Positions 24,229-60,341 of a stretch of 64,000 nucleotides of DNA are shown here, in pieces. Location: NCBI GenBank assembly GCA_965644295.1, contig CBFFRP010000442.1:1-64000 (forward strand), in the 5' to 3' direction. The translations under genes were made by a program, and so were the position numbers. The stretch is from Paraphysomonas bandaiensis. Lineage: Eukaryota; Protista; Chrysophyceae. The notes under the pieces are model-generated. The model worked only from the letters and a program-made list of their open reading frames with translations, was not told the origin of the DNA and did no database searches. Each line of letters opens with the position of its first letter. Positions within the stretch are counted from its first letter, which is position 1.

Positions 24229-25876
24229 AAATGTATTCTACTTTTACTTACGTATTTGTGGATAAATGTATCATGGATAAAAACAAGGGTCTATGTTATT
24301 CATTTAGCGGTCACTATGATTTTTCTGCAGCGCAGCGTATCTTACAATACATATACTGTCTATTCACATACCTATCGAAAGGTGTTTTCCGAAAGCGAAA
24401 ACAGCTCTTGATTATTTAGACTTGATGTGGCATGTATATATGTATATTCCTTAGTATGGCAATTACACGAAAATCTAGTAAATAGTTTTGCGCTCTACAA
24501 CCTATAGAGCAGAATTAGTTTCAGGAGAGTAAGTAATGAATATTTTGGTGATTTAATCGGTGCTCCAGTTTTAGATCTACCACATTCACTTGAAATAGTG
24601 CTTTCAACTTTCGACAGTACGTTGTACCATCATTCACTCTCTCGAGGTGTTTGCTTCACCACACTTTAGACTTCATGATGCAGAAAGTCAGTATTTCATG
24701 CTTATCTAGTACACGAAAAAAACCATGAAGATGCTATATATATACAGAGAGAATAGAAATCTGGTTGGAATATGAAATAACCTACAAGCGAGGGCACAAC
24801 AACGTACCCTTGCATCACAGAAGTTGGAATATTTTCTACTATAATATATGATGTATATAATATACACGTTATACGTTATCAATTTTGAAATCAAAATTTC
24901 ATAGGCCTTCTACCTTCGAGATGTATAAGACAGTACAGGCCCATGTGGCACTCTGATCATAACTTATAATTATAATTAAATAATATTATATAGATGATCA
25001 GTGAGACGGTCAGAGGGCTTGATTTTCCAGAAATAGAAACTTTACTTTTTATCAGTAGTGTAGTGTCAACACATGTAAGTTAAAACTTACGCAAAGCAGC
25101 GTGTCACGCACTCCTCGCCGTTAAGGAAAGACAGGCAAAGCTCTGAACATAATAGAACTGCTCACAAAACATGATGTATGCTACCAACAGAGAATTATGA
25201 TTTTACTTTAGAATCACTTGGTTCTGGGTTACTACCAATTATGGAAAAATCCTGATGCTGTCCATATACTTATTGAAAACATAATATCTAACGGACGAAA
25301 CTGCACATTAGCTAGAGTGAAGAGTCTGGTAATACGTTTTAATTTGATATATGAGGCATAAATTTGTTTGGAGAGAAATATGCAACATGCGCATTCTTAT
25401 AAGATTGTTTACATGCAAAATGAAAATTACACAACAACTTATCATTTCTGAAGGAGAAGAGGGGTAAAGACGTTGTTGTAGCTAGTCGACAACACAGTTG
25501 GTTGTGTCCGTATTAATCAATATATATTCCGTATTAATAAACAATGGGTAGTTGAATTGCTCGATAGATATACACGTTCTATTTTACTTAGTTTTGAAAC
25601 TGTGATTTTGTACTCCACATTACGAGCTTCGACTAAAGCTCCCTTAATTATTATCACGTGAACCTGAAATACTTTCATCTATTACTGCAGCAGTGTACAT
25701 CATTTGTTCAAAGATAGAATTGCTCCAATATTAGATTCAACTGCTTTCTCAACAATCACTATTCCTCATATACATCACAAAACATGAGACATTTTCTAAC
25801 TCTATTGCAAATTGCAATATCTGATGCATCTAATCACATTACTGAAAACGTTGACTTACATCAGGTGTGTAACATG

Positions 25877-28800
25877 CTACCCCGATTCAGACCACTCCAT
25901 CCTGCACGCCAAGTACATATCCTCGCCTTGTCTACTGGTAAGCAAATACTCCTCATCAAGTGGTCCTTTGTGATTCGCCACGTCGATGAGCCTCATAGAT
26001 AGTTCTGCCAGTATCGAGTCGCCTCTCAAGCGATTGTCGTGCATTACTTTCACAATCAGTACTGAATTGACAGGATCATGAACAACAAAGTTGAACGACT
26101 CATCGAACGACGGGTCATGGTGATCCTAAAAATCACAATAAATATGATATATAAATCTCCCAACCAACACTACATAATCATGTACTATATCTGTGCCAGA
26201 CACATACGAAATGTAGAAAACGAACTTTAAATTCGGTTTTCGTTTAGAGTGAATTGCAATGTGAACCAAAGTACTTGCGACATGCCACATAAATACCTTT
26301 TGAACAGCAGTTTCCTTTTTTACGCTCCCCACACTGAATATGACATACGGCCGCACAGAAGAAGAAAGCATAGTGTGGACTTTAAAGTTCCTTCCTCGAA
26401 TGCAACTTATAGTAAGCACCCCCGTACGGTTTCCAGCACCTGTAAACACAACACAAATCACTAACAGAGCACCACAAAGAAACACGGGATTTAATCATTT
26501 CCATTTTTCGATTTAAAGTCATACCTCTAAAACTGGATTGTTTAGATGGTGATAACTTCTTCGAAATGCGATGAGGGGATTTTACGTACTCTTCAGTAGT
26601 TGCTGAGGAATCAACAGCTGAAACGCTATGCTGCAAGTTCGCTCGAGCAGACGCAGCAGCTGCTTTTAATCCAGTTACCTAAATATTTAAATTTCGTTAA
26701 GCACGAAACAACGCACAAATATATATATATATGAGCATCAAGCTCTTCTAACCTGGTTGACAACACCTTGCACAGTAGTTGCGCGCTTCAAAGACTTTCC
26801 ATTCGGAGGATTATCTCCAATATCAGCGTCAACAACTTCAGCCTCCAAAATATCACTTGTCAGGGCACTTGGCGAAAAATCAAAAATAACATCTTTTGCT
26901 TGTTCAGCATCTTTCTCATCTCTCTTTTGAGCAGCAGATTTCTTCAGTGGACAGTATTCACACTCTAGCTGAATGGTACCAGTCGAAGTCTCCAGCAAAT
27001 CTAAATCCAGTTCTGTCACTTCAAAGTTTGGAAGGGAATCGAGCTGAACAGTAACTTTTCCTAAGAAATCGCTAGCAGTGCCGATGTCGTAGTCATAGAT
27101 CATCAACTCAACAAACTGAGTTTCTTTATCAAAGACCATGATATCAAAATTTTCGTTCCTGTGTTACAGTACAATGTTGCTCACACATGCTACGACTTCA
27201 ATCAAGAGTACTTACCACACGGGATTTAATGACTTCTTGACAACCGCTGTTTTTTGTACAGTATCCATAAACCGTACTTCACAAAAAGGATCAGACGATG
27301 TCAAATCTGCGACTTTCAATTTCTTTGCACTGATTACGCGTAAATGCAACAAACCAACAGGAGAGATGTTAGTCAGTGCTTTCACATCCACATCTGGCAC
27401 CATGGGGATGACGAACTTTGATGGATACAATGCGATGGTTGTGAGAATTGATCGAATTATATTGTTCACAGCAGCTGCAAATGAGTGACAATGCGTTAAG
27501 TGGCACGCTAAAGTGAGAATGGGTTTTATGCTCTACATTGCACACGAATAATGCAAAAACAAACGATAATACTATCAAGAGACATGTGCATTTAATGTAA
27601 CGATTGGAAGCTTACCAGCAACATTGTATTCAGCGGCACCAATATTCATAACATCCAATGCGCCCACTTTAAATGAGAAATCCACAAATGGTTTTTGCAT
27701 GCACGTAACAGTGATTGCACCGAAACAAGGAAATCGCGGGATTAAGGGAGTCAACTCAACTCGAAGTATGGCTGAGATGCGGATATCACTCAGCTCAATT
27801 GTCAGCGGGAAACCCTTTTGTCCTACTTCCAATGCCACCTGATATCCATAATAATTGCTTTTCATAAATTATAAAAAGAGTTTTACCTCAGGGTTCCCGG
27901 CCCACTTCAGTTCTAAATCTAGCCTCACACAGTTTTCTTCGGTACGGTGATTTCTGATTCCAACAATAACTGGTGCAATGGTACCCAGTGTAATTCTCGA
28001 AAAGCACAGAGAGGATATATATCCCGGTTTATACGAATCTAGTATTGGTTGCACAGTTTCCATAATAACAGCTTCTGTTGACTCAGACACCGAAGACCAC
28101 AACTTCGTCAACAAATCGTTAAGCCATTGCACGCGCTGAACGTCTGAGTGTTTGATCCAAGACGGCATCTCTTCAGCAACATACTTAAGTATCTGCGCAG
28201 ACGATTAAAATGAAATCCGACTATTACAGCACTTCTCATTCTCATATAACTATAAGTACACCCCAAGCTGCTTATAAAATCTTACATTAACATCACTGAC
28301 AATCCCAATCGCAGCTTTCCTGTCTTGTCTGTCTTTGTCGGCTTTCAAATATGACACATACATCAATGATAGTGGCAAATAATACAACGGAGAAATGCCA
28401 ATAGACTGTAGTGTAATTGGTAATGCAACAATACCCATCAGAAACAATGGATTATATCCAAAAGGTGAGGAATACTCAGAGGACAGCTTCGCTGCCACAA
28501 CATTACGCTCCAATGCCTCTTCACTAGCCGCAAGAACTGGGGGGATGTCACCCTCTTGTGCATGAAGACTGATGAAATGTAAATACATAAAAGCGAAAAT
28601 ATGAACCACGCCTTAAAAGTAGTACCATAAATATAAAATATAATACAATATAGAAGCTCAACGTCATGAATAGTTGAAATATAAATAATAATGGTGACTA
28701 CTTGTACTACCTATACAACGCCAGTCGCTCGTCCGCCAGTGCATGTCGCTGCCTCGTTGCCTCCTGTGCTTGCTTTTCCTGCACCCACCTATACTTACCG

Positions 28801-31717
28801 GTCAGAATATAGTCGACGACGTTTATACAATAAAAATATTTACAGGAATGAGAGCATATAATGAAACACAATATTTGTGCAAAGTAACGATACAGTATTG
28901 CACAGCTCGCAGTATTCGCACCTCGGAACATCATCAATGACACTCGACAACACCATTTTGAGAAGCAATAGCGAATGCTCCAATATCACCATGAGAATGA
29001 ATCTGCACGAGAATAAGCGTCAACTACAATGCTATGATAAAAAGTAGTGCTAAATCAGAAGGCCCTCAATATAGAAAGCAATTGACAATACAGCTATTGG
29101 TAGTGTATTATCTCACAAACGAATATATAAAACAACACTGACAGAATATCAGTGCGGGTACGTACTTTGCTTGATCAGACTGAAATAGCGACTCATAATC
29201 GCTTGGAATAACGGTATTGAGATTGTCAGAGACAATGCACAATAAAAAACAATTGCTTAACACAGCAGCAAAATTTAATATGGTCAGACAAGTGAACCAC
29301 CCTCCAATTGTTGACCTGAGAAGTTCAAATACCATATCAGTCGTACTGATGTCACATCCATTAATAAGCAAATATAAAATCCGCAACAAGACTACAACGG
29401 CGGTGAGAAATTTACGTGATGTAAATTACCTGTCGGTAAGGGGCGGGCGACGACTACGGGAAAGTTTCACAAAATCTACTTTGGCTTCCATCATATTGTT
29501 CAAAAGAGCAAGCGCGGGTGCAATGGGAAACACCACAGCAAACATCGTCACGTAACCAAACTGCAAACAATTGAAGGAAACATAAATTTAGCTGTTGCGA
29601 ATCCCATAGGAGGAATTACAGCAAAATGTGATTATCAAACAAAAATTCGTAGATGGCCGCTGCATACAGACGGCTATGCAATGCTACAACTATCCCATGT
29701 ATCAGCAGACAAAGTGCACCTGCAATATTAGCTCCAGGTAGTCTGCTCTGAGGTTATACTCATCTCTCTCAAGTTCCTTGATTACACGGGATTTCCAAGT
29801 TCTGTTGTTGATAGTATTAGTATTTCTGTTAATGCAAATAGATGGCATACGCACAACACGATGTCTACAGTAATATCATTTCCATTACTTGTTAGCAGTC
29901 TCGTTATCAACGAGAGGGTCTAAACTTTCTCCTTCACATATTGACGCCGTGTCTGGACCATCTTTACTCTGAAATAAAGCCAATGGTAAGAGTTTTTCGA
30001 ATAATCAATTTACGAGCAAATATCACACACAACAGTACAAGTGACGGAGAATGTGAAATATTACCCTGTTCGTAAGTTTCCCATAATGCTTTAGACCAAG
30101 CTTGACAAGGGCAGGTGTAAAGAGCTCAAGAATATTATCCACAATCTGCCAAGAAAGTAACTATAGATGTAGAATACTACTCCATGTGATTTAATATAGC
30201 AAAAATTACATTGGCGCAATGCAAATTTAAGTTGAGGGCAAATCATTCATACAAACGCTCAGACGCACCGCATTTGTTATGAGCATTGAAGCCAAGAGTG
30301 TTCTAAGTCTCTCCTGGTCTCTAAGGTAAAATGCCACGTATATAAGTGCACAGTAGCGGTTAACAAACTGAAAAGCAAACTGCTTGATGATTAAATGATG
30401 TTCTTTCTCCGCCTAAAAGTCCAGTCAGCTCATACGTCAAGTCAAATAAAAAGTAGACATAAACATATAAGCAAGTCAGCTCTAGCTGCACGACATACAT
30501 TCACTGAAACTTACAGGTGTACTATGGCATTCGTAGTTATTTAGCTGCACCACAATCAAGTCATACGCAAACCCAGCCACCACCGGGAGAAGTGAATACA
30601 CAACAGTAGGCCAATATCCAAGTATTGATGAGCCATAAATCTCATTCGCGGTGTCCATCAGATGGATGAAGTATACCATAACGCGCACAAGAGACAATAT
30701 CATGATAACGATTGCTGGTATGGTTACCGCAAACCGGAACAGCTTGTTAGGCTGAGGAATACCCAAACTCTGAATATATCATCTTAGACATACACTATTC
30801 ACAGTGCTAAACTGTGCCTACACACAGATACAACTCCAGGCATATGCATAATCACGCTATAGTCTTTGAAATACGGGCATAAAATAATTACACACCAAGA
30901 AAGTGCTTACACAACAATACAAGTTTGCACGATATTACCTTCGCGATTTGCTTCTGCTGCTCTTCGTGGTCAGCATTGTAGACCCCCCAACTGTAGGCCA
31001 AGGCTGAATTTCGCCTTTTCCAATACTCGAGAAATACTGTGCTCCACACGGCAATTAGTATCATAAAGTAAGGGCTATAAGGATCGTCTACATGACCCGT
31101 ATATAGTTGATGGCAAAACAATACAGCGCCAGCAAGAGCAGGTGTGATTAAAAATTTGCTGTAGAATGATAGCCACGCAAAGTAGAGGGATATTTGAGAG
31201 CCGAAGTAATCATTCAAGGCCTGTAAATCCAGACCATCTGTGGCTGTATTGCCCAACATACTAATCTGTACCATTCACAGACAAAATAGTCAATTAGGAG
31301 ATATGATGGAGCGGATAATTACAGGACACATACCTTCTCGGGCTGATGCATGACCCAAATATCTCCATGCTTAATTCCAGAGCGCTCAATGATTTTATGT
31401 GAGCGGTACACAATACGTGTAATATCAGCATGTGAAGAATTTCCCATCGAACGCACAGGAAAATTGTACTGAATAGCTAATTTAGTGTGCAGCTTTGGCG
31501 ACAGAGTCAAAACAAGAGCGTGTTTATTGTTTTGTTTGAGGGCATATTTCGGTATGAATCCTCGTTTCTTCAGCTCATAAGAGACTGTCTTCATATCACC
31601 CTCAACTCCGCTGATGAGAATATACGGAAGAGAGTGAACTCTGTTGTCAGGGGAGAGAGATGAGACCGACCCATCGCTGCTGTTGTTATGCTCCGCATAC
31701 TTCTTAAGTAACTCCAT
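25877..31717 (-). CDS. Anoctamin (TMEM16, ANO8/10-like) fused to an extended-synaptotagmin module (hairpin-SMP-C2-C2)
   Basis: ANO motifs DYFGSQISLYFAWL, FQFVNRY, DYLELILQFGYVTMF, LEHSLLLLK. Phase-consistent introns lead into MPSWIKHSDVQRVQWLN (SMP), SSDPFCEV...LNPVW (C2A) and a second C2 ending EWSESG*. Confidence 0.82.
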
Positions 31718-31989
31718 AGGAATATATAGAGAGATAGAGGAGACAGAGGGGTCAGAGTAACATCACTCACAGTCAAGGAGAGGGATCTTATCTGTATATC
31801 AGGAGAGCAGAGGAGGGAGGGCGGGTTGTATGCGGTATGATATGAGCGAGGAGATCATAGTGCACACAGGAGTACACAGCAGCCTACACACACTGTATGA
31901 TCATACATACAGACGTACACTACAGCAGTACAGTAGACTCATGTGCAATGTTGAGCTTGCTTTTTTCTGCTACTATGACAACAGTACTG

Positions 31990-32352
31990 TAGCACAGTAC
32001 AGATAGTACTGTAGTACATCCATATATCTAGAGTAGGGCAGTACGGTAGCACAGTACAGATAGTACAGTACAGCAGTACATGCCCATATATCTAGAGTAC
32101 AGTAGTATGGTAGCACAGTACAGATAGTACAGTACAGCAGTACATCCCATATATCTAGAGTAGGGCAATATGGTAGCACAGTACAGATAGTACAGTACAG
32201 CAGTACATCCCATATATCTAGAGTAGGGCAGTATGGTAGCACAGTACAGATAGTACAGTACAGCAGTACATCCCATATATCTAGAGTAGGGCAGTATGGT
32301 AGCACAGTACAGATAGTACAGTACAGCAGTACATCCCCATATATCTAGAGTA
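31990..32352. repeat. Minisatellite, 63-bp unit, ~6 copies
   Basis: CTAGAGTAGGGC recurs at 32155, 32218 and 32281; lies between divergent gene starts. Confidence 0.92.
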
Positions 32353-32476
32353 CAGCAGGAGCAGATCTGCGGCTCTGATGTGTGAGATGCTCATCCAGCT
32401 TGCTTCTATCTGTATATTCCACAGCAGACAGCAGCAGATCACACACATATACACACACATCTCCCGCCCAGTGAGT

Positions 32477-34907
32477 ATGAATAGCCCCTCCAAGATATTC
32501 AATGACCCCATACATGGCCACATAGAGATCAGCAGCCTGTGTGTGCGTATCATCGACACTCCTGAGTTCCAGCGACTGCGTGACATCAGCCAGTTAGGGG
32601 GGGTCTACTATGTGTTCCCAGGAGCTGCCAGTAAACGATTCGAGCACTGTATTGGAGTATCTCATCTAGCTAAAACATTTGTTTGCAAGTTAAGGGAGGA
32701 ACAACCGGAGCTCAAGATAACAGATGCGGATGTTCTCTGTGTGGAGGTGGCTGGACTGTGTCATGATCTTGGGCATGGACCATTCTCTCATCTCTATGAT
32801 GGAAAGTTCCTCAAAGCAGTCAATCCTCAAACAGATTTTGTTCATGAGCATGCTAGTGTCGGTATATTGGACCTTCTTATACGCGAAAACTCACTTGAAG
32901 CTGAATTTGAAAAGCATAATTTGACCTCAGATGGTGCATGGAAATGTTCGCCTCGCTGTTATCGCACTCTAATTGTATCACAGATATTCATTTCATCAAA
33001 GAATTGATTCTTGGTGACGAAGCTGAGGCTCCCGAGGGATTTACATGGAAAGGTCGAGGAGACAAAACTTTTCTATATGACATCGTTGCCAATAAGAGAA
33101 ATGGTATTGATGTCGACAAGGTAAGGGCACTTTATGTTTGTCTATGTCAATGAATTTTGTATAATAATGCTAATGAAATTTGCGTTTTTTAAGCATATTA
33201 TAAATGACAACTGCACGAAATGTATTGTTTATGTTATACTGATGTTTAATTGTGGATATGTCCAGTTTGATTATTTTGCCCGCGATTGTCACGTGCTTGG
33301 TTTAACTAAGAGCTTCGACTGTTTACGTCTTATGCGATTTGCAAGGTATTTAGTCTGCAATTATTTCAATGTGGCATCTTGGTTGTAACCATAGTCCCGT
33401 AGAGTGCACACGATACACCGGTCAGCAAGCGGTGACTTTGTCGATAGTGCGGCGAATACTGTAGAAATCGAAGACACAAGTGGACATACGGCGACTGAGA
33501 TATGTTACCACATTAAGGAAGCGTGGAATCTGTTTGAGGTATTAGTTGCTGAATAAAATTTCATTTTTCAGAGAAGTTTATACTTCAGTGTATTATTTCA
33601 GTGCATGTATTGTGTGGGCAACTAGTATTCGCCATGTAATGTTATGTATATTGGTGCGAAATCCACCTAATGATACATGTGTAGCTCTTTCACACAAGAT
33701 ATGCGCTTCACAAACGGGCGTATCAGCACAAGGTTGCTTGTGCCGTTGAGCTAATGATAACCGAAGCATTGGTGGCTGCGAACAATCATGTAACAATACC
33801 TGGTATGGTGAAAATGTACTAGGCTCTCTCTCGTTGTTACACTTGCATTGGCAGGACTTAACGGTACACCGCGTCGCATGTCTGATTGTCCGCTTGATAT
33901 GCACGCCTATTGGAAATTGGGAGAGTATCTTATTAGACAGATAGAGAACTCCACTGATGATGTAAGTGTGAATTGCTTGCTGCATAAACTTTTCGTGTAT
34001 ATATGTCGTTCTGTATATATGTCGTGGATAACCAAATTGCTCTGATAATTCTGTCCACAGAAACTCCAGGAATCACGTGATATAATGCGTAGATTGCGCA
34101 AGCGAGATATATTTGCGCACATTGGTGAAATCTTGCTTACTCCTTCTCAGAAACACCTAGCAAAGGATGGGGGTGTTAAGGCTAAGGCTGATTTACTTGA
34201 AATTATATATGCTCAATCTCCTCCAGGTGGTGAGTGTGAGATAACAGAAAAGGACGTTATTTGTGTAGTTGTGAAGATGGGATATGGAAAAGGAGGGAAA
34301 AACCCTGTGATGGTAAGTCTCACCTCTGGTATTGTGTTGTTGATGACTGCGCTGATAAAGTTAATATCTAAGCTAACAATAGTATCTTTATAATTCGAAC
34401 GAGAAGTTTTCCCAGTGTAAGAGTAACGTTGTTTTTAGGATTTAACAGCATTTTATAGACCGGAGAAGAGACACAGTACTGAATGTGATGAGAGTAGCCA
34501 GTTTGCAGTTGGCATTTTACCACCAGGTTTGCGTTTCTTGTTGTGCTTTTGTCATATTGCTCTTCGAATATATTAGTTTTGTACTAATATATATTCTTCA
34601 ATTACTTCGAATAGCGTCAGTTAGTCGGTTAATTCCAACCGAATTTGAAGAACTCTATCTCCGTGTGTACACAAGATACAAACACCATCGAGAAACCGTA
34701 ACGAAAGCATTTGATAAGGTATGAACCGAACGTGTGTAGTTATTTCTACCCACACCTATGCAAATTATGTACATATCAACTTCCTAACCTTTGTATAATT
34801 ATGTTTCAATGCAGTGGTGCGACTTAATGGAATCTTCATCAAATGCTCCGTTTACACTGTCGCCGACTAAATCTCCACGAAAGAAGAGGAAGACAGCTGC
34901 TGATTAA
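32477..34907 (+). CDS. SAMHD1: SAMHD1-like HD-domain dNTP triphosphohydrolase (no SAM domain)
   Basis: [78 protein letters not shown]. Confidence 0.9.
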
Positions 34908-43122: not shown

Positions 43123-46100
43123 CTACAGCGAACCATACTCCCCGACGTCCTTCAGACGAGAAAAGGGGCAAGCCTTGTTCGATAGGTAAGCGAACTCAAA
43201 GTCTTCCAAATGAAAGAAACGATGACAGCTCTGAGAAATCGCAATCTCGATCTCAGGCAGCATATTCCTGGAAGATAAATTACATATTGCAAGGTTGTAC
43301 AAATGAATACACTGAATATACAGATAGTACACGTTTAAGGCACAACATATACAACGTCGAGGTCCACTACTGAAAACTCAATAACAACTTACTTGTAGAA
43401 AGTCGCCCGTTTATTCTGTGAGGATGGACGGCATACAAATACCTCTGACCTCTTCATACCGTGCAAAAGTGTGGCCGTGTCCACAGTAACAGGGACGTAT
43501 GACATCGCATTCATCTGATATCAAGCAAGTTACACACCAGTTTAGCACAAATCATAGAAACAAGCTGTGACGGAAACAAGAATAAAAACATCCTAATATA
43601 CCATACACAAGCAGTGGTGAAAGAACTCACTTGAGTTTCCAACGTCCGATTTAGGCACATTGGGAAGAGTTCTTCACTTGGTATGCCACCTCTCAGCTCT
43701 GTTGAACTTCCCATCATATCTTCCGTACTATCCAGGCTGCCGAATTGCATCATATCTGCATCTCCCATCTTTCCTTCATTCCACCCAGACTTGTCAGGAG
43801 AACCCACGGGGCGATTTCTCCCTGATGCAGGATTGGTGCGGATCAATTCGATAGCCTCCTCGTCGCTGATAGACGGCTCAGGAACAAACTCAACCAGAGG
43901 AAGAATATCAAAATTAATAAACGAGCGCACAAACGGATGTCCACAGTTTGTGCACACATCACCCTTGGCAAACTTGTTCGTAAAAGGGTTTAAGAGCGGA
44001 TTTGTTGAACTGCAACGGTAGCACACGGGTAAATGCTCCGGCTCATCTCTGACAGGCTTCGCCTGAACAATGAGCATATCACGCTCTACTTCTTCTTGCC
44101 ATCGCGGCGGAATCTGAAGCTTGCTTAACCTATCGTAAGTGTGACGTGCCAGTTTGAATGCTCCTAAGAGCATTGACTGGCGCGCAAGGGTATATAACGT
44201 GGCAGCTTTAGATATGCCATAAGGAATAGTTTCCGAGCTACCGAGGGAGTTGATGATGAACCGGGAGACCTGAAACAGCAGCTCAGGAGGATGACTGGTA
44301 AAAGGATCCGTCACATATGAGTTTATATTAGCATACGCAAAGTACAGATCTGCGTTGTGCTCGCATTCAAGTTGGTATCGGGTATCAGTGCCATCGCTCA
44401 ATTCCTTTGCCAATAGCCAATAAAAATAGGACGAATCCTTGAACCTCGACTCGACAACAGAGTTAAAAGTTAATTCTTCTAATATTTTCCGAGACAAATC
44501 CTGACGTCCCGCTTTCTTGTACGCCTGCATAGCGTCTTCGCAGCGGTCTTGCATAATAAGCCAGTCTGCATAAGGCAAAAACACAGACGAGTCAAACTTT
44601 CCTTCGTGGTCATCGGCTAATTTAGCAGCTTCAACCCACATTTGGCGCTTCACGAAAAGAGACATTAATTTCGAAATATCTCCAAGTTTGGTGTAGGCCT
44701 CCCTGGCCATAGCATCTTCATTCGCTTGAGAGAGTACCTCACCGCAGAATGATAAGACGTCGGTCTGGTCTGCTGGGGCTGCCCTGACCACGTCAATCAA
44801 TGCAGTCTGCCATCCGGTTTCCGGAGCAGCCTCAGATATGATTTTTGCGGCCTGCATATAAGATCCCATAGAAGAATATATTTCTGCAGCCCCCTTCCAG
44901 TCGTTAATCTCTTCAAGCCATTTTGCCTGCTGCTGCACTAGAGCACTATGATCAAACGCTGCAGCTTTATCGCTAGACGACAAACTTTGTGCAAACATTT
45001 TCGCATCATTCCACATACGGAGATCGGTAAAGAGGCGTATCGCAGCATCAACCCTTCCGGCACGGGCATATACTTTAGCCGCCTCATGATGGTGCCCCTG
45101 ATAGGCCAGTATCTCAGCGTGCCAAGAAGGGTCTAAAAAGGACTTTGTGGTGATAGATGTAGTAGGTGCGGGGGTGGGGTTACTGGCTACTGCATGGCGG
45201 CCTCGTCTTGGCGCCGACCCGGCACTGGAGTCTTTTGCAGGTGCTTGGGGTTCCTTAGACGCTTTCGCCCCATCGCCAACGTCCCTCTCAATTTCTTCTA
45301 TCAAATGTAAAAATTTTGAGTCCTTCAATCGGGCAAATGCTGCCTTCGCAATATCAAGGTGATTCGCACGAAGAGACCTAAGAGCAAGCACCTTCCAGTC
45401 TCCCTCCGTTGCTCCCAGACATGCGACATGATACGCAGCCTTGTAGTCATCTTTCTCAATGAGCTTCATCATATTTCCCCCTTGAGGAACATCCATGCCA
45501 AGCATATTATTGTTGTACAGACAATAAATTTTCTGTCCACTAAATCCAATTGCTATTCCAGACAGGTGCTGCTCCTGTGGCTCCTGAGAAGACTGGTTCT
45601 TATATGTTCCCGCCGCCTGTGTACCGTCCGTCGCTTCGTCAGATCTCGCGGATATACCGGATACAACGAACATTGAAGACTCCCCACTGTAGCACAGCAT
45701 TTCATCGACCTCGGCGTTAAAACATACTGACACAGCACCATCCGCCTGAAATAGTGTGTCTCTTGTTTTGAGATCGATTACTAGCAGCTTCTTTTCAGAA
45801 TCAACGACTGCAAGCTTATCCCGATTCAAACTGAGATCAGCGCACCGCACAGGGTTGGAGCTACGCCATAGCTCTAATGGGAAAGGGTTATCTACAAACA
45901 CCTTATATGTAACACCATTATAGAGAGATACGAGTACAGCCTCTCTGCCATCTGGGCCTCCGTTCATTTTGACATAACAAATTGACGATTCCAACATCCA
46001 AGAGCGCTGCAATTGGCCATCGAAACTGTAGAGTTGTATAACATTGCTGCTACAAAATAATATTGACTGTGACGTAACCAACATGTGTTCGCATGGTATG

Positions 46101-47642
46101 TTCGCGGATTGTTGAATCCTTTCTCTGCGCAGGCGGAAGTGCATATCGAGTGTCTCTTCAGGATTGGACTCATATATGCATACTTTATCCGACAGTTGTA
46201 CGGCAAGCTTGTTTTTGTACAAAGACAGACGCTGGACATAGTCGCGGCACTTGATTCGCACCTTGCGATCGGATATCAAGTGGTGTACTACAACCTCAGT
46301 GAGATTCTCTCGAAATGCATAGCGATCCTTGTATAGAGTATGAACTACATCAAATTTCATCTGCAGCAGACTGATGCCGCCAGAATCACACCCAACTACA
46401 ACTTTATCAGAGTCACCGTGTGATGCACATCCCCATATCCAGGAGTCACGCGAACATAGTTCCGACAATCTTAATCCATCTCGACTGTACAAATTAACCT
46501 TTTTATTCGAACCGCCAATCACCTAAGAAACAATATCATATTACATACATTGGATTTCCTTATTATGACGTACCATATAGTTTGTACGGTTACCCCCTAA
46601 GTTGGCAATGCTAAGAGCACAAGGATAAAAACGGAGTGGTCGCTCGCCTTGAATACGATGGGCAGTGGAATTTATCCTGTGTACAAGTAAACACAATCAG
46701 TGGACAATATCTATCGGCGTTGTAAGAGTGGGCTCACTACATGTCCTACAACCTCGGTATACAAGTGTAAATTATCGTACCTATACAGAGAAAGTGTTTT
46801 ATCCCAGCATCCTACCACCAGTAGATCATTATCCCCTCCTCCGGAAGGCGAAGAGTTTCCCGCCCCCGGCTTTTGTGACCCAGATGCATTCCCCATAGAT
46901 GGAACAAACTCAAGGCACCATACTGGTGCACGGCGCTCGATGTGATGTAGTTCATCCGATTGTGCATTACGGATACTAACCCATCCGTTCATCATGCCCA
47001 ACGCCAATATAGAACCATCGGAGCTCCAGGCAGCACAGAGAATCTTTGAGTGAACCTTTTCTTTGACAACTTGTTTCTGTTCAGGAGTCCACATACCGAA
47101 ATCAACCTGCGAACACACGCACAGAGACATGAGTGGCCGGTATATATATATATATACGTGTGCTGTATATGCGTACCTCTGAGCAGGACGCCAATTGCAT
47201 CGTGACTGGATTGTACTTGACGCTCTGTATGGATGCGGTGTGGTTGTATTTGAGCATTCCCTGTCCCGTTATCTTCCATATGACGACTATCTTATCAGCA
47301 CCTCCTACACACACAGTCACGTATATACAGTCACACACATATACAGACATCAACCTGAAGCAAACTTGGATCCATCAAAACTGAAATCAACGCAGTAGAC
47401 AGTGTCTTTATGTCCGCGCAGAGACTCGAGCAGGTCGCCCGTCTCTGCATTATACAGCAGCACTCTGTTGCCTACAGCCACTATAACTCGTGTGCCATCT
47501 ACACACATACAACTGTATTAAGGGTACACGGAGGGTAGAGGATGCGAGGGGAGTGACCTGGAGATATCGCCACGTCGTTGATAGGGTTACGCACACCGTC
47601 TCTGTCGGGCACCTGATCGCTCCACAGGACAGATGTGTTCAT
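43123..47642 (-). CDS. IFT122: Intraflagellar transport protein 122
   Basis: WD40 start (VAVGNRVLLYN, SLRGHKDTVY), LYKDRYAFRENLTEVVV, KVRIKCRDYV, CYRCSSTNPLLN, CTNCGHPFVRSF, ILPLVEFVPE. Confidence 0.95.
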
Positions 47643-48203
47643 CACAGTGACGGAGAGGTGAGTATACTCTGGTCTAGTCTCGTCTCGTCTCGTCTCGTCT
47701 AGGATCGTATATTCACAGCACTGCTCCCGATAGTCTACAAGATCACTAGTTTAAATATACACATACACACATACATACATGATGAGGTCGTGTACAGCAG
47801 TATACATACATACATACACATATAGAGGCTACAGTCTACAGGCTGTTCCATAACTAACGAACCCCCATACAAACAACACACACATATACGTTTTATAGTG
47901 GAGGGATACGGCTCGTAGTCTGATGTATTCCTGCACAGAGATTCAAATATCGAATGAGGTGTACGGTATATGGCTGTATATAGCTGTATATTGATCAGGC
48001 TTTTGATTGGCTGTAGGGCGGAAGATGTAGCTCTGTAGGTATGAGCCGTATACACACATATAGTACACATATACACATATACACACACTCACATATAAAG
48101 AGCTGCAGCTACACGTATAGCTCTCTCTATATAGTTACCTGTCGCTGCTGATCGCTAGTGGAGCTACTGTCTGGGCATTACTCTGTCTGAATTATTGATT
48201 AAC

Positions 48204-54060: not shown

Positions 54061-54600
54061 ATGGACGAAGTCACACTGCCCCCATTGAAGAAAAGGAATA
54101 TCGTGCTTGAGGTAAAGCGCTCCAGACAGTGTGGTGTGCTTCCAGTGAATGCACGACACAAGCGGGAGGTTAATTTGGTGTTGGAGGCTTTGCCGGGTCT
54201 GCCCAATGAGACGAGCGGCTTCCCCAGTATGGCCACTGAAAGGGCGATTCTTAAGGCTATCGATAATATCCCTGAAATGGACGTCAAAAGGAGCTACAAA
54301 GTTTATACCGTTCAGGAGCGTAGGGCTGGACTCATTGCCAGGGTAATCGATGGCAAGAGCGCTGAATATGTTCTCAGGGAGTACGGTGTCTCTATCCGCA
54401 CCCAGGGACGGGACATGAAAACCATCAGGGAGTTGCATGGACTCAACACGAAGGAGTTCAATACGTTTCGGAGTGATCCCACAAACCACTCTATGCTGCG
54501 GGAGGCCATCATGGAACTGGATTACTCCCCATCCGGTCCCAATGGTTCGCTCCACTCCAATATGAATCGCGATATCTTGGCAATGAAACCTCCAGGATAA
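54061..54600 (+). CDS. HTH (psq/CENP-B-like) protein, possibly a truncated pogo-type transposase
   Basis: YTVQERRAGLIARVIDGKSAEYVLREYGVSIRT resembles an HTH_psq pattern; no DDE domain follows. Confidence 0.45.
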   Translation: MDEVTLPPLKKRNIVLEVKRSRQCGVLPVNARHKREVNLVLEALPGLPNETSGFPSMATERAILKAIDNIPEMDVKRSYKVYTVQERRAGLIARVIDGKSAEYVLREYGVSIRTQGRDMKTIRELHGLNTKEFNTFRSDPTNHSMLREAIMELDYSPSGPNGSLHSNMNRDILAMKPPG

Positions 54601-55220
54601 AGCTGGATATAAGAGAGCTGCATTTGGAATTGGAGAAGGGTGAGAGGAGATTGATATGTCGGTTACAGATCGATAACCAATGGATGTGGCAACTTGTTTT
54701 TTGAATCGAATTCTTGCTAGTCCCTTATATTTTATTTTGACACTAAGTGATCTTTTATTTTCTCTTGGCCCTACTGGTTGGTTCTTTATATTTTTCTGCT
54801 ATTTTACAGAATAGTAACCACTTCACTCTATGCAAAAGGCAATGCATACATACCATATATCAGCAGTACATATTCGTATCTACTCTAACTATCGTATGTC
54901 TGCGTTTACGTAACATCGTTTTATTTTGACTTGTTAATGTGTTTTTTTGAATTGTGGAATTTAATTACAGATTGGATTAATGTAATAAATTTCAACACTG
55001 ATGACTACATACCTCTTGTTGGCTAAACTAATCCAGCTTCTACGAAATAACCTAAGTCGGAATTCTGAACAAATTTCAATGGGTGCTATATTTAAATTAA
55101 TCGTAATAATTTTACTAAACATTCAACAGAACAAACATATGTTTTGAAATGAGTTCATCTATACTCCTATACTACTCGACGTCAATAACATGTGTGTAGC
55201 AAAATTGGGTATGACAAGTA

Positions 55221-55409
55221 GTGAATGTCTGATTATTTAGCAATAGGCGTTGAGACCTTGCATCAATTAGTGGCTAGAAGAATGCTAGTCATACTAGTTA
55301 GACCACTACCCGTAACTAATCAATACAAACTCTTTTATCCTACTATTTAACGCTACGAAAGCTGCTTGTGCGTCGCCGCAAGCACCAAGGTGCAACCACT
55401 TCCGTTCTA
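55221..55409 (-). mobile_element. Short non-LTR retroelement insertion with a 13-bp TSD (copy 2)
   Basis: GGTATGACAAGTA at 55208-55220 and 55410-55422; homologous to 15691-15934. Confidence 0.7.
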
Positions 55410-56641
55410 GGTATGACAAGTATGGGTGATTTAGGAGGTTGTTATGGCTGAAGAATAAGATGAAGTGATGTAGGTTGTAGTATGAGATGAGATGTAGATG
55501 GTAGTTATGATTAGATTAGAAGATACGAGTATTAAGGCCAGATATAGGGTTGGAGTGTACCGTGACTATCCGTATATACGGATGTAACGGACGTTTATGG
55601 TAACCCGTACAGTATTATGATGGTATACGTAGGTATTCTGTAGGATGATATAGGAGTAGATAGCAGGATGTTAAGGGATTTCTATATGATTATTTCTGGA
55701 AGTAGAAAACTAGCTATTTATGGCTGGGAAACCACTTCTAGAATTAACTATGGGGATATAGGTAGAAGGATATGGAGTTTTAGATATAATAGTGAAAGTT
55801 GATATTGTAGTTGAGTTGAAAGTTAAGAAGTAGCGAAGTAAAGAGTAAGAAGAGGAAGTTAAGTGAAGAGTGTTGTGAGAAGACTATCCTACCCCACATC
55901 ACCTGTGCACATGGACAGGGATGATAAGACCAGCAATGTTAGTCATGATAGCGAAGCTCAATCACCCGTAGTCGTTACATGTGTGTGGAAATCAAAAATT
56001 GGAACTATAAATACTGAGGTAGTCAGGTTCGTTCTCGCATTCATCCATCATCCAGTGCAAGCTGCTGTTGAGCTCCCGCTGTTCCTAAGATTTCAGAATC
56101 GCTTATTTCAGAAATGTAATGAACGATGCAGCACAGGAATGCATAGAGAAATTAGTGTGCTGGTGTGATGTGCGATGATAATATATCCCTCATATTTCAC
56201 ACATAATGAACAATAATAGCAATGAACAGCCAATCCTACAGAGCTCTTTGATTACGACTCATAATGCTAATCTGGCTGAGTAGCAGCCACACGATGTAAG
56301 GGGCAAGGGGGTTACTGCCACTACAATGACATCACGATGATACACTTCTGCGAAGCTCTTACTAAATATATCGACACTATCAAAAGTTGGGAGCTATATT
56401 TATATTATTAATCATTTCGCGACATGCATGGCACTGCGACGCTTGGTGTCAGCGCTAGATACCTACAATCAAGTCGTGAACAGTACGAGTGTGGTCGCAT
56501 ATTAGCGAAAGATATCGGTCACACTGTGCAAAAAAAACTACCATTCAAGACTACAACGCATGTTTTGAATAAAAGAGCATTGGTTTCAGGACATTCTCGT
56601 CATGAATTCTGTACGCTTCATGTTGGTACATCGCGTTGTTA

Positions 56642-58122
56642 TCAGACAGATCCGTACACCCCTTCTGGTATATGATACGGATTAGTGCACAGTCCATGGT
56701 CACTGCACTGCGCATCCTTGCCAAGATGATGCTTTGGCTCGCCGGTAACAGAATCAACACTTCCTCCCTCGTCAGACATTGAGCGATGTCTAAGATATAA
56801 ATGACGCTCCACCTTGTGCTCCAAGCCGTCACGCTTCTGGTAGTCCACCTGATAGCATGTGACATGAAGATGAGAACAACTAAAAATACCATCTACACTT
56901 ACGTGAACGAATGCCCGCTCCACTACATCATATTCCTCAATTCTGTGCTGTAAAGCAAGTGCAATGTCATGGCTTTCACGTACAGTCATCTCAGCAGGAA
57001 GTACTATTTCCATTTCGACATCTGTGATAACGAATCCATGTAAGACGAAAAATATTACCGCAGACAAGGGGCAAACTCATTCACCCAATAATATACAGCC
57101 AACATGACGAGGAAATCTAAGACTTACTGAAAGCCGCTCCAAAGTGGTAAGCTCTGGTTACATCGACGGTGATACGAGGGTCGTGGTTTTCGGCGAGCTC
57201 GTTCATCGAATTGATAAACTCATCGGGGGCAGTATGTCCCACTATTTTCTACAGTCCATATATTATCAGATCAACTTAGAGCATTTACGTAATAGTAACT
57301 CAGATCTACCTTCACTTGATCCATAATAACATCGTGCCAACGATATATAATGACCGCCGATATTGCGATTGCCCCCACAGGATCTATCCACCACCTCAGA
57401 GGGTACTGAATAGATATATAAGCTGTCAAAATAGCCATAGTGTTACTCATGACATCATTCAAGTGGTCCTCAGCTAATGCATCTAGAGTGTCTGATGAGA
57501 GGTTGTTTTTGCTATTCACATGACGGCAGTAAATAAAGAGAATAACCTTGAGACCGGTCCCGACACCTGTTCGGAATTAAAGAACACTAACAAATCCAAC
57601 CGAACAACTGTATACCTAATATTGCAAACATTATGACTCCATAATGCAACTCGGGTATGGCCCCTCGAAAAACCCCATCAATAAGCTCCATAAATGAAAC
57701 TAAATCAAATATAAAACAGCGATTAGAAACATAACAAGGCTTACATTGCACGACTTCAATACTGGCCATAATCATGACAGCTGCACAACACAACACTCCC
57801 AATGCCTCGAGTCTGGATCGTCCTATCGGATAATTGGAGTGATGTATCTGTACGCTGCTCTCAGTGGTCGATAAGACAGCTTGAGAGATGAGATCCACTA
57901 CAGTGACATGACCTGTTAGTAGCTATCTATATAACATAACTGCATTGATGTACCCGCCGAGTCAACCAGAGCCGCTGCTACAGCCTTACTATACGAGAAC
58001 ACAAACACATAGAGCTTAACGAAGAAGAGGAACCAGTTGACCACCCATGAGGCCTGCGTGGCGATTACAACTGAATCGTATCGACTAACACTCTCCTGAG
58101 GCTCTATCGGCTCATACTTCAT
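56642..58122 (-). CDS. Cation diffusion facilitator, Mn-CDF/MTP8-11-like
   Basis: AVAAALVDSAVDLIS, YPIGRSRLEALG, ALAEDHLNDV, WIDPVGAI, HDIALALQ..IE, VERAFVHVDY. Confidence 0.9.
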
Positions 58123-58710
58123 GATCAATGATGATAAGATGACTCGCTATATCCTCACTGCTATATGGTTCGAGCGGGAACTCTATCGGGGATATATAGA
58201 GAGATAGACGGATGTATGGATGTTAATGCGGTTAGTTATATGGTGGATGCGTGTATGTCACCTATACATACATACATATACATACATACACATACATATC
58301 TAATCCACTGTACTGTACTATACAGTCCGTATACGTATACTATACAATGCGAATGGCATGGAGCAGCACTGGTACACGACGTATAAACACCCTCTGCTTA
58401 CATCACTCCAACTAACCAATCAACATTCTTTCAAGATGCAAACACTCTTATGATTGGTTTATAATTCAACTGAACTGTCCAACATCTTTATACACACTGT
58501 AGTATTATGTGTAGTGGGTAGTGGGAGATACTGTACTGCTGTACATGTACATCAGTATAGTATAAGTGTAGTACAGTACAGTAGCAGAGTAGTGTGTAGG
58601 TACGAAGCACTGTATGTACACCCAGAGAGTGAAACAGCAGCAATACATACGCCACTTCTGCGAACTCTAAGCATATAGATAGAGAGGTACAGATACAGGC
58701 TATCTGCAAT

Positions 58711-60341
58711 ATGGACCCCTCCGGTGTTCGTACGGATCAAGTAGCTGTTGAGTCTGAGTGTGAGGAGGTGGCTCATAGTGTGGGAGGGATGACTCTGGAT
58801 GATAGTCATAACAATGAGACTGTTCATAAGAAAAAACACAACAAGAGCGATACTGAGGACTCTAAAGGCAATCGTAATGATCATAGCGATGATCAGAATA
58901 AGAAAAAAAAGAAAAAGAAGAAGAAGAAGAAGAGGGCGGATGATACATCACAATCAGAAGGAGAGGGAGATGAGACTGATAGAAGACACAGAAAACATAA
59001 GAAGAGAAAGAAGAAGAAGAGGGCAGAGGATACATCACAATCAGAAGGAGAGGGAGATGATAGTGATAGAAGACACAGAAAGCATAAGAAAAAGAAAAAG
59101 AGGAAGAAGAAGGACCGGAGTGGTGATGAGACTGCAGAGGATAGCCAAACGGAGAACGAAGCTAATGCTGCGGCTAGGAAACGCCCTGATGGTCCTGTTC
59201 TTGAGAAACGCGCCGCTCGGCGACCTGGAAACAAATTGGAACCTGAGGAATGGACACGAGAAGACCTCATGGAGAAGCTGTCGAGGTTTGGCACCTACGA
59301 GATCGATCGCTCAACTGGATGTGGTACTGTGCGTGTGGAGGGTAAGCGGCTCTTGCAGGATGAAGTCGCGATCCTTGTTGAGCTGTTCAGACGGAATACT
59401 GAGATACAGGTGATCACTTTCAAGAAATGTTTCATGACTGACGAAACTCTGGCATCGCTCTGTGAAGAGGCGTTTTTTGGACTACGCCATGTGAAACGAT
59501 TGGCTCTTCCTCAGAATGCACTCACAAGGGAGTCCACACATATGATCATCAAGACGTTTGCAAGCCGAGTGCGGGGCTTACAGAGTCTTGATTTACGGGA
59601 TAACATCATGAATGCAGAAGACAGTCGGTTGCTTTTCAAGGCTTTTCCCGCCATTCAATATTTGAATGGAGTGAATTTAACCCCTTTGAAGCAAGATAGT
59701 GAGGACAAAAGTTACTCAGCTGCGGACAAGAAAATGACTATCACAGAGATATCAATTATATGCTGTATACTGGAGCGCTATATATATCTTGACACTATAG
59801 ACCTTTCCAAAAACTTTATAAACTCGGAATGTCTTCACATGCTTGCCGCCACCCTGGAGCCTTTGCGCAACATAAAGAATATTAATCTGCGATTAAACCC
59901 TCTCACTAATGATGGTGAAGACAATACCGGAGTGCTAGCTATTATGCGTATGCTAAAAAAAAATAAATGCATATTGTACATGGATATCACCGGGTGCAAG
60001 GTCCCTACCAAGATTGCTGATGATATCGAAAGATCGCTTATGGTTAATCGTAGTGTGGAGGCGTCAGTTCGAGGTATGTGGCAGATGGTAGCTGCTTTCT
60101 GTTCTAATAGTAGTGAGTAGGCAATCGCTTCATGCTGTACATAGAGAACAGAATAGCAGCAGGTGCTCCACCGCCACCCCGCACATACTTTCATGGATGG
60201 ACTCCGAGCCTGAAGTTGGATGACACATTTCTGAATTCAAAACAGAATGCAGCCAAAAATATGGATGTCGTTGTGGAGGGCGATCATATTATTCTTCCGA
60301 GAGGTATAGGAGGGAAGAGAGCGGGGGCAAGTAGAAGCTGA
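58711..60341 (+). CDS. RNI-like LRR protein with Lys-rich N-terminus
   Basis: LQSLDLRDN, LDTIDLSKNFI, INLRLNPL; duplicated KKKRAxDTSQSEGEGD..DRRHRKHKK block; intron ~60074-60143. Confidence 0.8.

Follow-up and report, generated by a model that had tools for sequence, protein, structure and literature searches.

We analyzed a 64,000-nucleotide (nt) stretch of the genome of the chrysophyte Paraphysomonas bandaiensis (GenBank assembly GCA_965644295.1, contig CBFFRP010000442.1, positions 1 to 64,000; here called the window), in which a single minus-strand gene joins a TMEM16 (anoctamin) membrane protein in frame to an extended-synaptotagmin (E-Syt) lipid-transfer module (Table 1). The coding sequence starts with an ATG at 31717, preceded upstream by an in-frame stop (local frame check), and ends with a TAG at 25879-25877; with the exons joined at contig-derived joints, its 1271 codons are free of stops. 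A preliminary description made from the letters of the sequence had given exactly these two ends. Homology searches were run exon by exon, exons being joined only locally to check frame and stops, and whole-protein steps used a public peptide, P0177, as a stand-in for the spliced product. On single exons, the Pfam profile Anoctamin (PF04547) matched at 30891-31274, 30485-30766, 29429-29566, and 29111-29389, SMP_LBD (PF17047) matched at 27872-28168 and 27578-27865, and C2 matched at 27215-27469 and 26741-27139.

Splicing across the TMEM16/E-Syt junction

Three introns lie where the TMEM16 half passes into the E-Syt half, all of them GT-AG and all in frame when read on the minus strand. They agree exactly, in the genomic sequence and in spliced contigs, with the three introns proposed in the preliminary description. 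At junction 1, the reading ATT GAT GAT GTT CCG AG continues beyond the intron with G TGG GTG CAG, giving IDDVP-R-WVQEKQ with the arginine codon divided as AG/G. At junction 2, TTG TAT AG continues with T CTT CAT GCA, giving LALY-S-LHAQEGD with the serine codon divided as AG/T. At junction 3, GAT GTT AAT is followed by ATA CTT AAG, and SDVN runs into ILKYVAEEMPSW. Intron 2 decides between one gene and two, because no stop and no alternative start occurs there outside it: if retained, it would end the TMEM16 open reading frame (ORF) at a TAG at 28710-28708 (LALYR followed by the stop), and an in-frame ATG lies within it near 28590.

Sixteen public runs hold the stretch wholly or partly, and four of them (X1, X2, X4, and X5) were mapped to 25850-31800. 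X1, X2, and X4 carry two organism labels (A and B) and come from three studies; X5, a polyA marine metatranscriptome, brings the studies to four. One spliced contig in each of X1, X2, and X4 (4074, 4354, and 4172 nt, respectively) spans the mapped interval with all introns removed. The contig joints across the junction fall at 28192/28286, 28568/28711, and 28785/28919 (28788/28922 once the cut is moved by 3 nt), and joint 28568/28711 recurs in a contig of X5. On the plus strand every skipped piece reads CT..AC, as GT-AG introns of a minus-strand gene do. The coordinates of the contig fixed two of the joints, the 1082 nt between mapped pieces being equal to the sum of exons 3-11. The preliminary description had suggested a look at RNA over 29000-28100 and had named transcripts that end between 28900 and 28600, with a separate start for the lipid-transfer part, as the pattern that would speak against a fusion; the assembled contigs are instead spliced straight across this interval.

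The public peptide P0177 (MMETSP; 1271 amino acids [aa], "type:complete," from the 4172-nt contig) is collinear with the gene model: all exon translations occur in it in order, with 1260/1263 residues identical (99.8%). The X4 transcript, labeled as organism B, differs from the window by 11 single bases over ~4 kb of exon, of which three change amino acids (D15E, Q355L, and N1089S), a degree of difference that marks organisms A and B, judged by these sequences, as strains or very close species. We conclude that the locus is one gene with one mRNA and one 1271-aa ORF, which joins a full TMEM16 to a complete hairpin-SMP-C2-C2 E-Syt module. The in-frame fusion of the preliminary description is borne out by this single spliced mRNA, as well as by conservation of the layout in other algae (below). 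That the locus yields a single fused product seems to us beyond reasonable doubt.

Table 1. Positions of the fusion gene, its junction introns, its encoded parts, and its two paralogues. Positions refer to the window unless another sequence is named; residues are numbered on the 1271-aa protein.
Feature	Position	Strand	Description and basis
Whole coding sequence	25877..31717	-	1271 codons + TAG in 19 exons; 18 introns (48-171 nt), all GT-AG
Junction intron 1	28789..28921	-	133 nt; after the tenth transmembrane helix (TM10) and the ...DDVP motif; joint in X1, X2, X4
Junction intron 2	28569..28710	-	142 nt; joint in X1, X2, X4 and the polyA metatranscriptome X5
Junction intron 3	28193..28285	-	93 nt; genomic sequence and contig joint
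TMEM16/anoctamin domain	28761..31214	-	aa 146-581, exons 2-11; PF04547 on P0177 and exon-wise matches
TMEM16 Ca2+-site codons	29474..30139	-	Alignment to TMEM16K
D373; N374; E377	30139-30137; adjacent; 30127-30125	-	Ca2+ site
D444; E447	29743-29741; 29734-29732	-	Ca2+ site
N472/N473; E476; D480	; 29488-29486; 29476-29474	-	Ca2+ site
Exon 11, cytosolic post-TM10 helix	28711..28788	-	aa 572-598; aligns to the TMEM16K post-TM10 helix
Exon 12, acidic linker, amphipathic helix, hydrophobic hairpin	28286..28568	-	aa 598-692; homologue motifs and model
Hydrophobic helical hairpin	28307..28450	-	aa 638-685; AlphaFold2 model, homologue hydropathy
SMP lipid-transfer domain	27398..28144	-	aa 709-894, exons 13-15; PF17047, 4P42 sequence and fold
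C2A	27026..27355	-	aa 909-999; Pfam C2, 4P42 alignment, ligand check
Spacer C2A-C2B	26526..27007	-	137 aa (aa 1006-1142), Ser/Ala/Lys/Asp-rich; composition
C2B and tail	25880..26439	-	~aa 1143-1255 + tail; aligns to E-Syt2 C2B
Paralogue 1	C397 ~54300-59000 = L002:1853-6487	+	TMEM16-hairpin-SMP-C2-C2; few introns
Paralogue 2	C354 ~43300-47900 = L003:2759-7365	-	TMEM16-hairpin-SMP-C2-C2; few introns

Makeup of the fused protein

On P0177, PF04547 matched over 2-460 of the 460 profile positions (expectation value [E] 1.6e-104; 350.8 bits vs a cut-off of 28). The closest solved TMEM16 relative is TMEM16K/ANO10 (5OC9; E 1e-46; aligned over aa 141-596), followed by fungal scramblases (~1e-34), TMEM16F (~1e-33), TMEM16A (~1e-28), and Ist2 (9e-10). 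By alignment, the TMEM16K ligands N444/E448/D497/E500/E529/D533, located in helices 6, 7, and 8, correspond to D373(N374)/E377/D444/E447/E476/D480, and E377, E447, N472, N473, E476, and D480 are invariant across 18 aligned fusion homologues. An AlphaFold2 model of P0177 residues 540-1010 (23 homologues; mean predicted local distance difference test [pLDDT] score of 75) put TM10 at 542-566 and the post-TM10 helix at 572-602. Judged by its sequence, the TMEM16 module is full: it has the cytosolic N-domain, the ten-helix membrane domain, a predicted intact two-Ca2+ site, and the post-TM10 helix.

A linker of ~40 residues leads from the TMEM16 module to the E-Syt module. In the model, an amphipathic helix at 610-630 precedes a hairpin composed of a 17-residue helix (638-654), a 3-residue turn, and a second helix (658-685) that runs into a basic stretch; the two helices are residues 99-115 and 119-146 of the modeled fragment. 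The first helix is too short to cross a bilayer. Hydrophobic segments occur at the hairpin position in all homologous linkers (hydropathy), and P638, P648, and G686 of this region are invariant in the 18-member alignment. All fusion members keep the same linker order, in which the post-TM10 helix is followed by a variable acidic stretch, F-G/S-Y/F-N-P, and a hairpin with conserved prolines; K-D-R-x-D-R-x-A-A-I-G-I-V-S-D-P comes after the hairpin, and then the SMP domain begins.

PF17047 scored 52.1 bits on P0177 (cut-off 27), and the human E-Syt2 SMP-C2A-C2B structure (4P42) matched by sequence with an E of 3.9e-37. Past the hairpin, the AlphaFold2 model forms an SMP barrel and a C2 sandwich; Foldseek searches with it ranked 4P42 at the top, with E values of 5e-22 and 5e-19 (for the second, 283 aligned columns and a root mean square deviation of 4.7 Å), followed by the SMP proteins Mmm1 and Mdm12 and by C2 domains. 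C2A holds all five Ca2+-ligand aspartates (D925, D930, D977, D979, and D985), with D930-P931 invariant in the 18-member alignment. The spacer beyond it had no Pfam match in the scan of P0177. Among the aligned loop residues of C2B, we found no acidic Ca2+ ligands in this protein or its homologues, and few Lys/Arg residues are visible in this domain. A homodimer model of the SMP domain reached an interaction score (ipSAE) of 0.56 against 0.31 for the best control, a pass that may be memory of the solved 4P42; contact agreement among its three runs is at least 90%, and the partner pLDDT is at least 77. The mark set by the tool was reached in calibration by 21/30 solved homodimers and 0/23 solved monomers. 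The model may speak for likeness and not for binding.

Homologues, paralogues, and flanking sequence

A full phmmer scan with the first SMP exon against 1.84 billion representatives of 50%-identity clusters gave 759 matches. A local TMEM16 profile located TMEM16 upstream of SMP in 20 of the best 150 of these 759 matches, mostly at the top of the list, and the fusion is carried by at least 20 protein clusters (50% identity). Pfam found Anoctamin, SMP_LBD, and C2 together in P0015, P0017, P0062, P0165, P0181, and others, with full-length members of 1150-1420 aa. The carriers with a name are Tribonema minus (KAG5191948.1, a protein whose annotation gives solely a chloride-channel domain), Tribonema gayanum, and Cladosiphon okamuranus, a brown alga. 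A named model diatom was absent from a word-based search in which 8000 candidates were scored, from which nothing follows. In P0164 the fusion is one intronless ORF of 1346 codons (L001:6001-10041; NCBI GCA_024449835.1, JAANTA011482278.1), and here the fusion is visible with no need to infer splicing.

The intronless group (P0017 and P0161-P0164) sits in GCA_024449895.1 and GCA_024449835.1, the latter being the assembly of JAANTA011482278.1, with record numbers that go beyond eleven million. In EukProt, one sister-cluster member is labeled Bolivina argentea (a foraminifer), and the representative of that cluster shares 88% identity with P0017 across the junction region. The source of this group may be a rhizarian gene or algal DNA in the records. 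A quick tree of the hairpin and the N-terminal half of SMP (149 columns) contained two supported fused clades, one with the window gene (Shimodaira-Hasegawa-like approximate likelihood ratio test [SH-aLRT] 89) and another, with an SH-aLRT of 99, in which the intronless group stands together with Tribonema and Cladosiphon; on an alignment this short, a single origin is neither shown nor excluded. A subfamily that lacks C2 domains (P0001 and P0173) was considered and rejected: P0173 (MMETSP Transcript_3345) is a second public transcript model of the window gene, frameshifted, that leaves P0177 after residue 943 and ends in a 16-residue frameshifted tail, and the remainder, from M962, was called separately as P0178 (310 aa). 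In protein databases, this split makes it look, wrongly, as though an isoform without C2 domains existed. P0172 (991 aa) has a 1269-aa sibling, P0181.

Within the 62.6-Mb assembly that contains the window gene, there are about a dozen TMEM16 loci, and SMP-like sequence was found at three places: the window gene, contig C397 at ~57.0-57.8 kb, and contig C354 at ~44.4-45.2 kb. Five SMP queries were used (PF17047, PF25669, the SMP of the window gene, a close homologue of that SMP, and a plant SYT); PF17047 alone found only the window gene, and protein queries were needed for the two paralogues. In both paralogues the SMP lies directly downstream of TMEM16 exons on the same strand. Both are collinear with P0177 from residue 23 to ~1240 at 25-30% identity (tblastn), share the linker motifs, and have Anoctamin and two C2 matches. 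A standalone E-Syt-type SMP was not detected in the genome with the five queries, within the sensitivity limits of an exon-wise six-frame search. With its full predicted site, the window gene differs from the paralogues, which have a degenerate Ca2+ site and may be Ist2-like.

Upstream of the fusion gene, a 0.66-kb spacer separates its ATG from a plus-strand ORF at 32378. A 63-bp minisatellite (6.0 copies, 93% matches) occupies 31982-32352 of this spacer, and the X2 contig, the longest, would reach ~31985, at the minisatellite edge, if it is collinear with the genome. The plus-strand ORFs at 32378-33153 contain an HD-domain motif and by eye resemble SAMHD1-type deoxynucleoside triphosphate triphosphohydrolases.

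A proposed scramblase and lipid shuttle in one chain

TMEM16 proteins have both termini in the cytosol, so a hairpin that follows the TMEM16 C terminus can enter the cytosolic leaflet of the same membrane, with the SMP and C2 domains facing the cytosol. TMEM16 proteins are also homodimers and E-Syt SMP domains dimerize, so that one two-fold complex can satisfy both halves. The fusion is topologically sound.

Each half resembles a known system. Compared with TMEM16K/anoctamin-10, a scramblase of the endoplasmic reticulum (ER) (5OC9 and 6R65), all Ca2+ ligands have counterparts and the post-TM10 helix is present; however, TMEM16K ends soon after that helix, whereas the window protein adds ~670 residues that make up a whole E-Syt module. 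With E-Syts, tricalbins, and plant SYT1 (4P42), the second half shares the order of hairpin, SMP, Ca2+-binding C2A, and Ca2+-independent C2B. In E-Syts, however, the hairpin is N-terminal, whereas here it follows a ten-helix TMEM16, and C2A and C2B, which are packed together in E-Syt2, are separated by the 137-aa spacer, with no third C2. Yeast Ist2 is a TMEM16-type tether linking the ER with the plasma membrane (PM) that recruits the lipid carriers Osh6/7 through a disordered tail (PMC8282664, PMC13286939). Like Ist2, the window protein has a TMEM16 body, a long C-terminal extension that would reach toward another membrane, and an attached putative lipid-transfer activity; unlike Ist2, which binds a separate ORP carrier noncovalently, it has the SMP in the same chain and an intact predicted Ca2+ site. 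We do not place it in the Ist2 type, given the E of 9e-10 to Ist2 vs 1e-46 to TMEM16K and a tail predicted to be folded as SMP-C2-C2 and not disordered. In the ATG9-ATG2 and XK-VPS13A pairs, a scramblase is combined with a lipid transfer protein and re-equilibrates the leaflet after transfer. Those partners are separate proteins with bridge-like carriers, whereas the window protein has an SMP of the shuttle/tube type and a covalent link.

Taken with these likenesses, the conserved residues point to a Ca2+-regulated scramblase and lipid shuttle as the best explanation overall for the fused protein, one that we consider moderately probable. The hairpin would dip into the cytosolic leaflet of the membrane in which TMEM16 itself resides, most likely the ER, a placement suggested by its nearest solved relative, the ER scramblase TMEM16K. 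With rising Ca2+, phospholipids of the donor membrane would be scrambled from leaflet to leaflet along the TMEM16 groove, and Ca2+-bound C2A would free or dock the SMP dimer, activating the shuttle. From its long spacer, the distal C2B would keep hold of the opposite membrane (the PM or another organelle), and the scramblase, in cis, would immediately re-equilibrate glycerolipids shuttled to or from the cytosolic leaflet. Coupling of the two activities is, in our estimate, somewhat favored. Regarding the scramblase plus shuttle tether of the preliminary description, the architecture stands as described, and backing for the function comes from conserved residues and knowledge of the families.

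The gene structure could instead reflect two adjacent genes, a TMEM16 gene that stops with the TAG at 28710-28708 and an E-Syt gene starting from the ATG near 28590, fused only by read-through or chimeric assembly. The stop and start in unspliced intron 2 would suit this arrangement, and transcript ends are invisible in contigs. Nevertheless, four runs, each of a different study and polyA X5 among them, all splice this intron out at GT-AG; orthologues have the same junction, one of them as a single intronless ORF; the linker is conserved over at least 20 clusters; and two paralogues of the same genome repeat the layout. Together, these data make two genes extremely improbable. An ion channel is also quite improbable: the Pfam family covers channels as well as scramblases, two activities that sequence alone cannot separate, and a Ca2+-activated channel would couple ion flux, rather than lipid flipping, to a contact-site tether. 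The window protein, however, is nearer to scramblases (1e-46, 1e-34) than to TMEM16A (1e-28), and dedicated TMEM16 channels are a derived animal feature.

More weight attaches to the idea that the TMEM16 part is a mere membrane anchor or dimerization platform, as in Ist2, making the protein an E-Syt with a large anchor in which scrambling and transfer are not coupled. We consider this unlikely for the window gene and favor it for the two paralogues, both of which have a degenerate Ca2+ site. The retained hairpin, the usual anchor of E-Syts, would fit it as well. On the other side, the Ca2+ ligands are invariant in the window gene and 18 homologues, which argues for selection on a Ca2+-gated activity, and the closest relatives are the active scramblases TMEM16K, nhTMEM16, and afTMEM16, not Ist2. 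The contact could also be other than ER-PM: in algae that have complex plastids, the ER may meet the chloroplast ER or the outer envelope of the plastid, or, with TMEM16 in the PM, the C2 domains may bind in cis. The named carriers are photosynthetic ochrophytes (Xanthophyceae and Phaeophyceae), and C2B has no demonstrated site for phosphatidylinositol 4,5-bisphosphate. The closest TMEM16, however, is ER resident, and ER-PM contacts are where E-Syts, tricalbins, and plant SYTs work, making a different contact rather doubtful.

Several points weigh against the Ca2+-regulated scramblase and shuttle as a single unit. Ist2 is reported to act as a tether without scramblase activity (PMC7387695). 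In the two paralogues, Ser replaces the TM7 Ca2+ ligands D444 and E447, and N472/N473 are lost as well; going by these residues, Ca2+-gated scrambling is probably gone in some family members. Residence in the ER is suggested only by similarity to TMEM16K. As for the transcript, contigs cannot show starts, and a minor internal promoter may give rise to a standalone E-Syt isoform; the depth of X5 is higher over the 3' part, which fits polyA bias and would fit such an isoform as well.

A more speculative proposal, which we put forward tentatively, is that E-Syt-type shuttling in ochrophytes may exist only covalently joined to TMEM16, with the SMP dimer held under the TMEM16 dimer and exchanging lipids with the leaflet fed by the groove. 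The family would since have split into a Ca2+-competent form (the window gene) and two forms with degenerate Ca2+ sites (the paralogues), possibly for different contacts, including those of the complex plastid.

The fusion is an uncharacterized but conserved combination of two well-known modules, and predicted proteins with this layout stand unremarked in public databases. A full-text literature search, with most subscription journals outside its coverage, found no description of a TMEM16-E-Syt fusion, consistent with the view taken in the preliminary description. The reviews covered treat TMEM16 (Ist2) and E-Syts as independent ER-PM tethers. In the Rosetta-stone sense, a natural fusion that is conserved is classic evidence for scrambling and transfer working together, and this one retains a predicted intact Ca2+ site in each half as well as a conserved linker, in a genome with three copies and no detected standalone E-Syt. 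Lipid transfer proteins load and unload the cytosolic leaflet only, and bulk lipid transfer therefore needs a scramblase. This need has been argued for bridge-like carriers (ATG2-ATG9 and VPS13-XK); to our knowledge, E-Syt/tricalbin shuttles have no established scramblase partner. If the speculative proposal of an SMP dimer held under the TMEM16 dimer is true, this would be the first scramblase coupling for a lipid transfer protein of the shuttle type rather than the bridge type. The fusion suggests, as a testable idea, that TMEM16K or Ist2 cooperates with E-Syts in yeast and animals. Because both activities would reside in a single polypeptide, experimenters could measure scrambling and transfer there, uncouple the two through point mutations, or split them, and the fusion offers a natural test of whether lipid flipping is coupled to shuttling between membranes.

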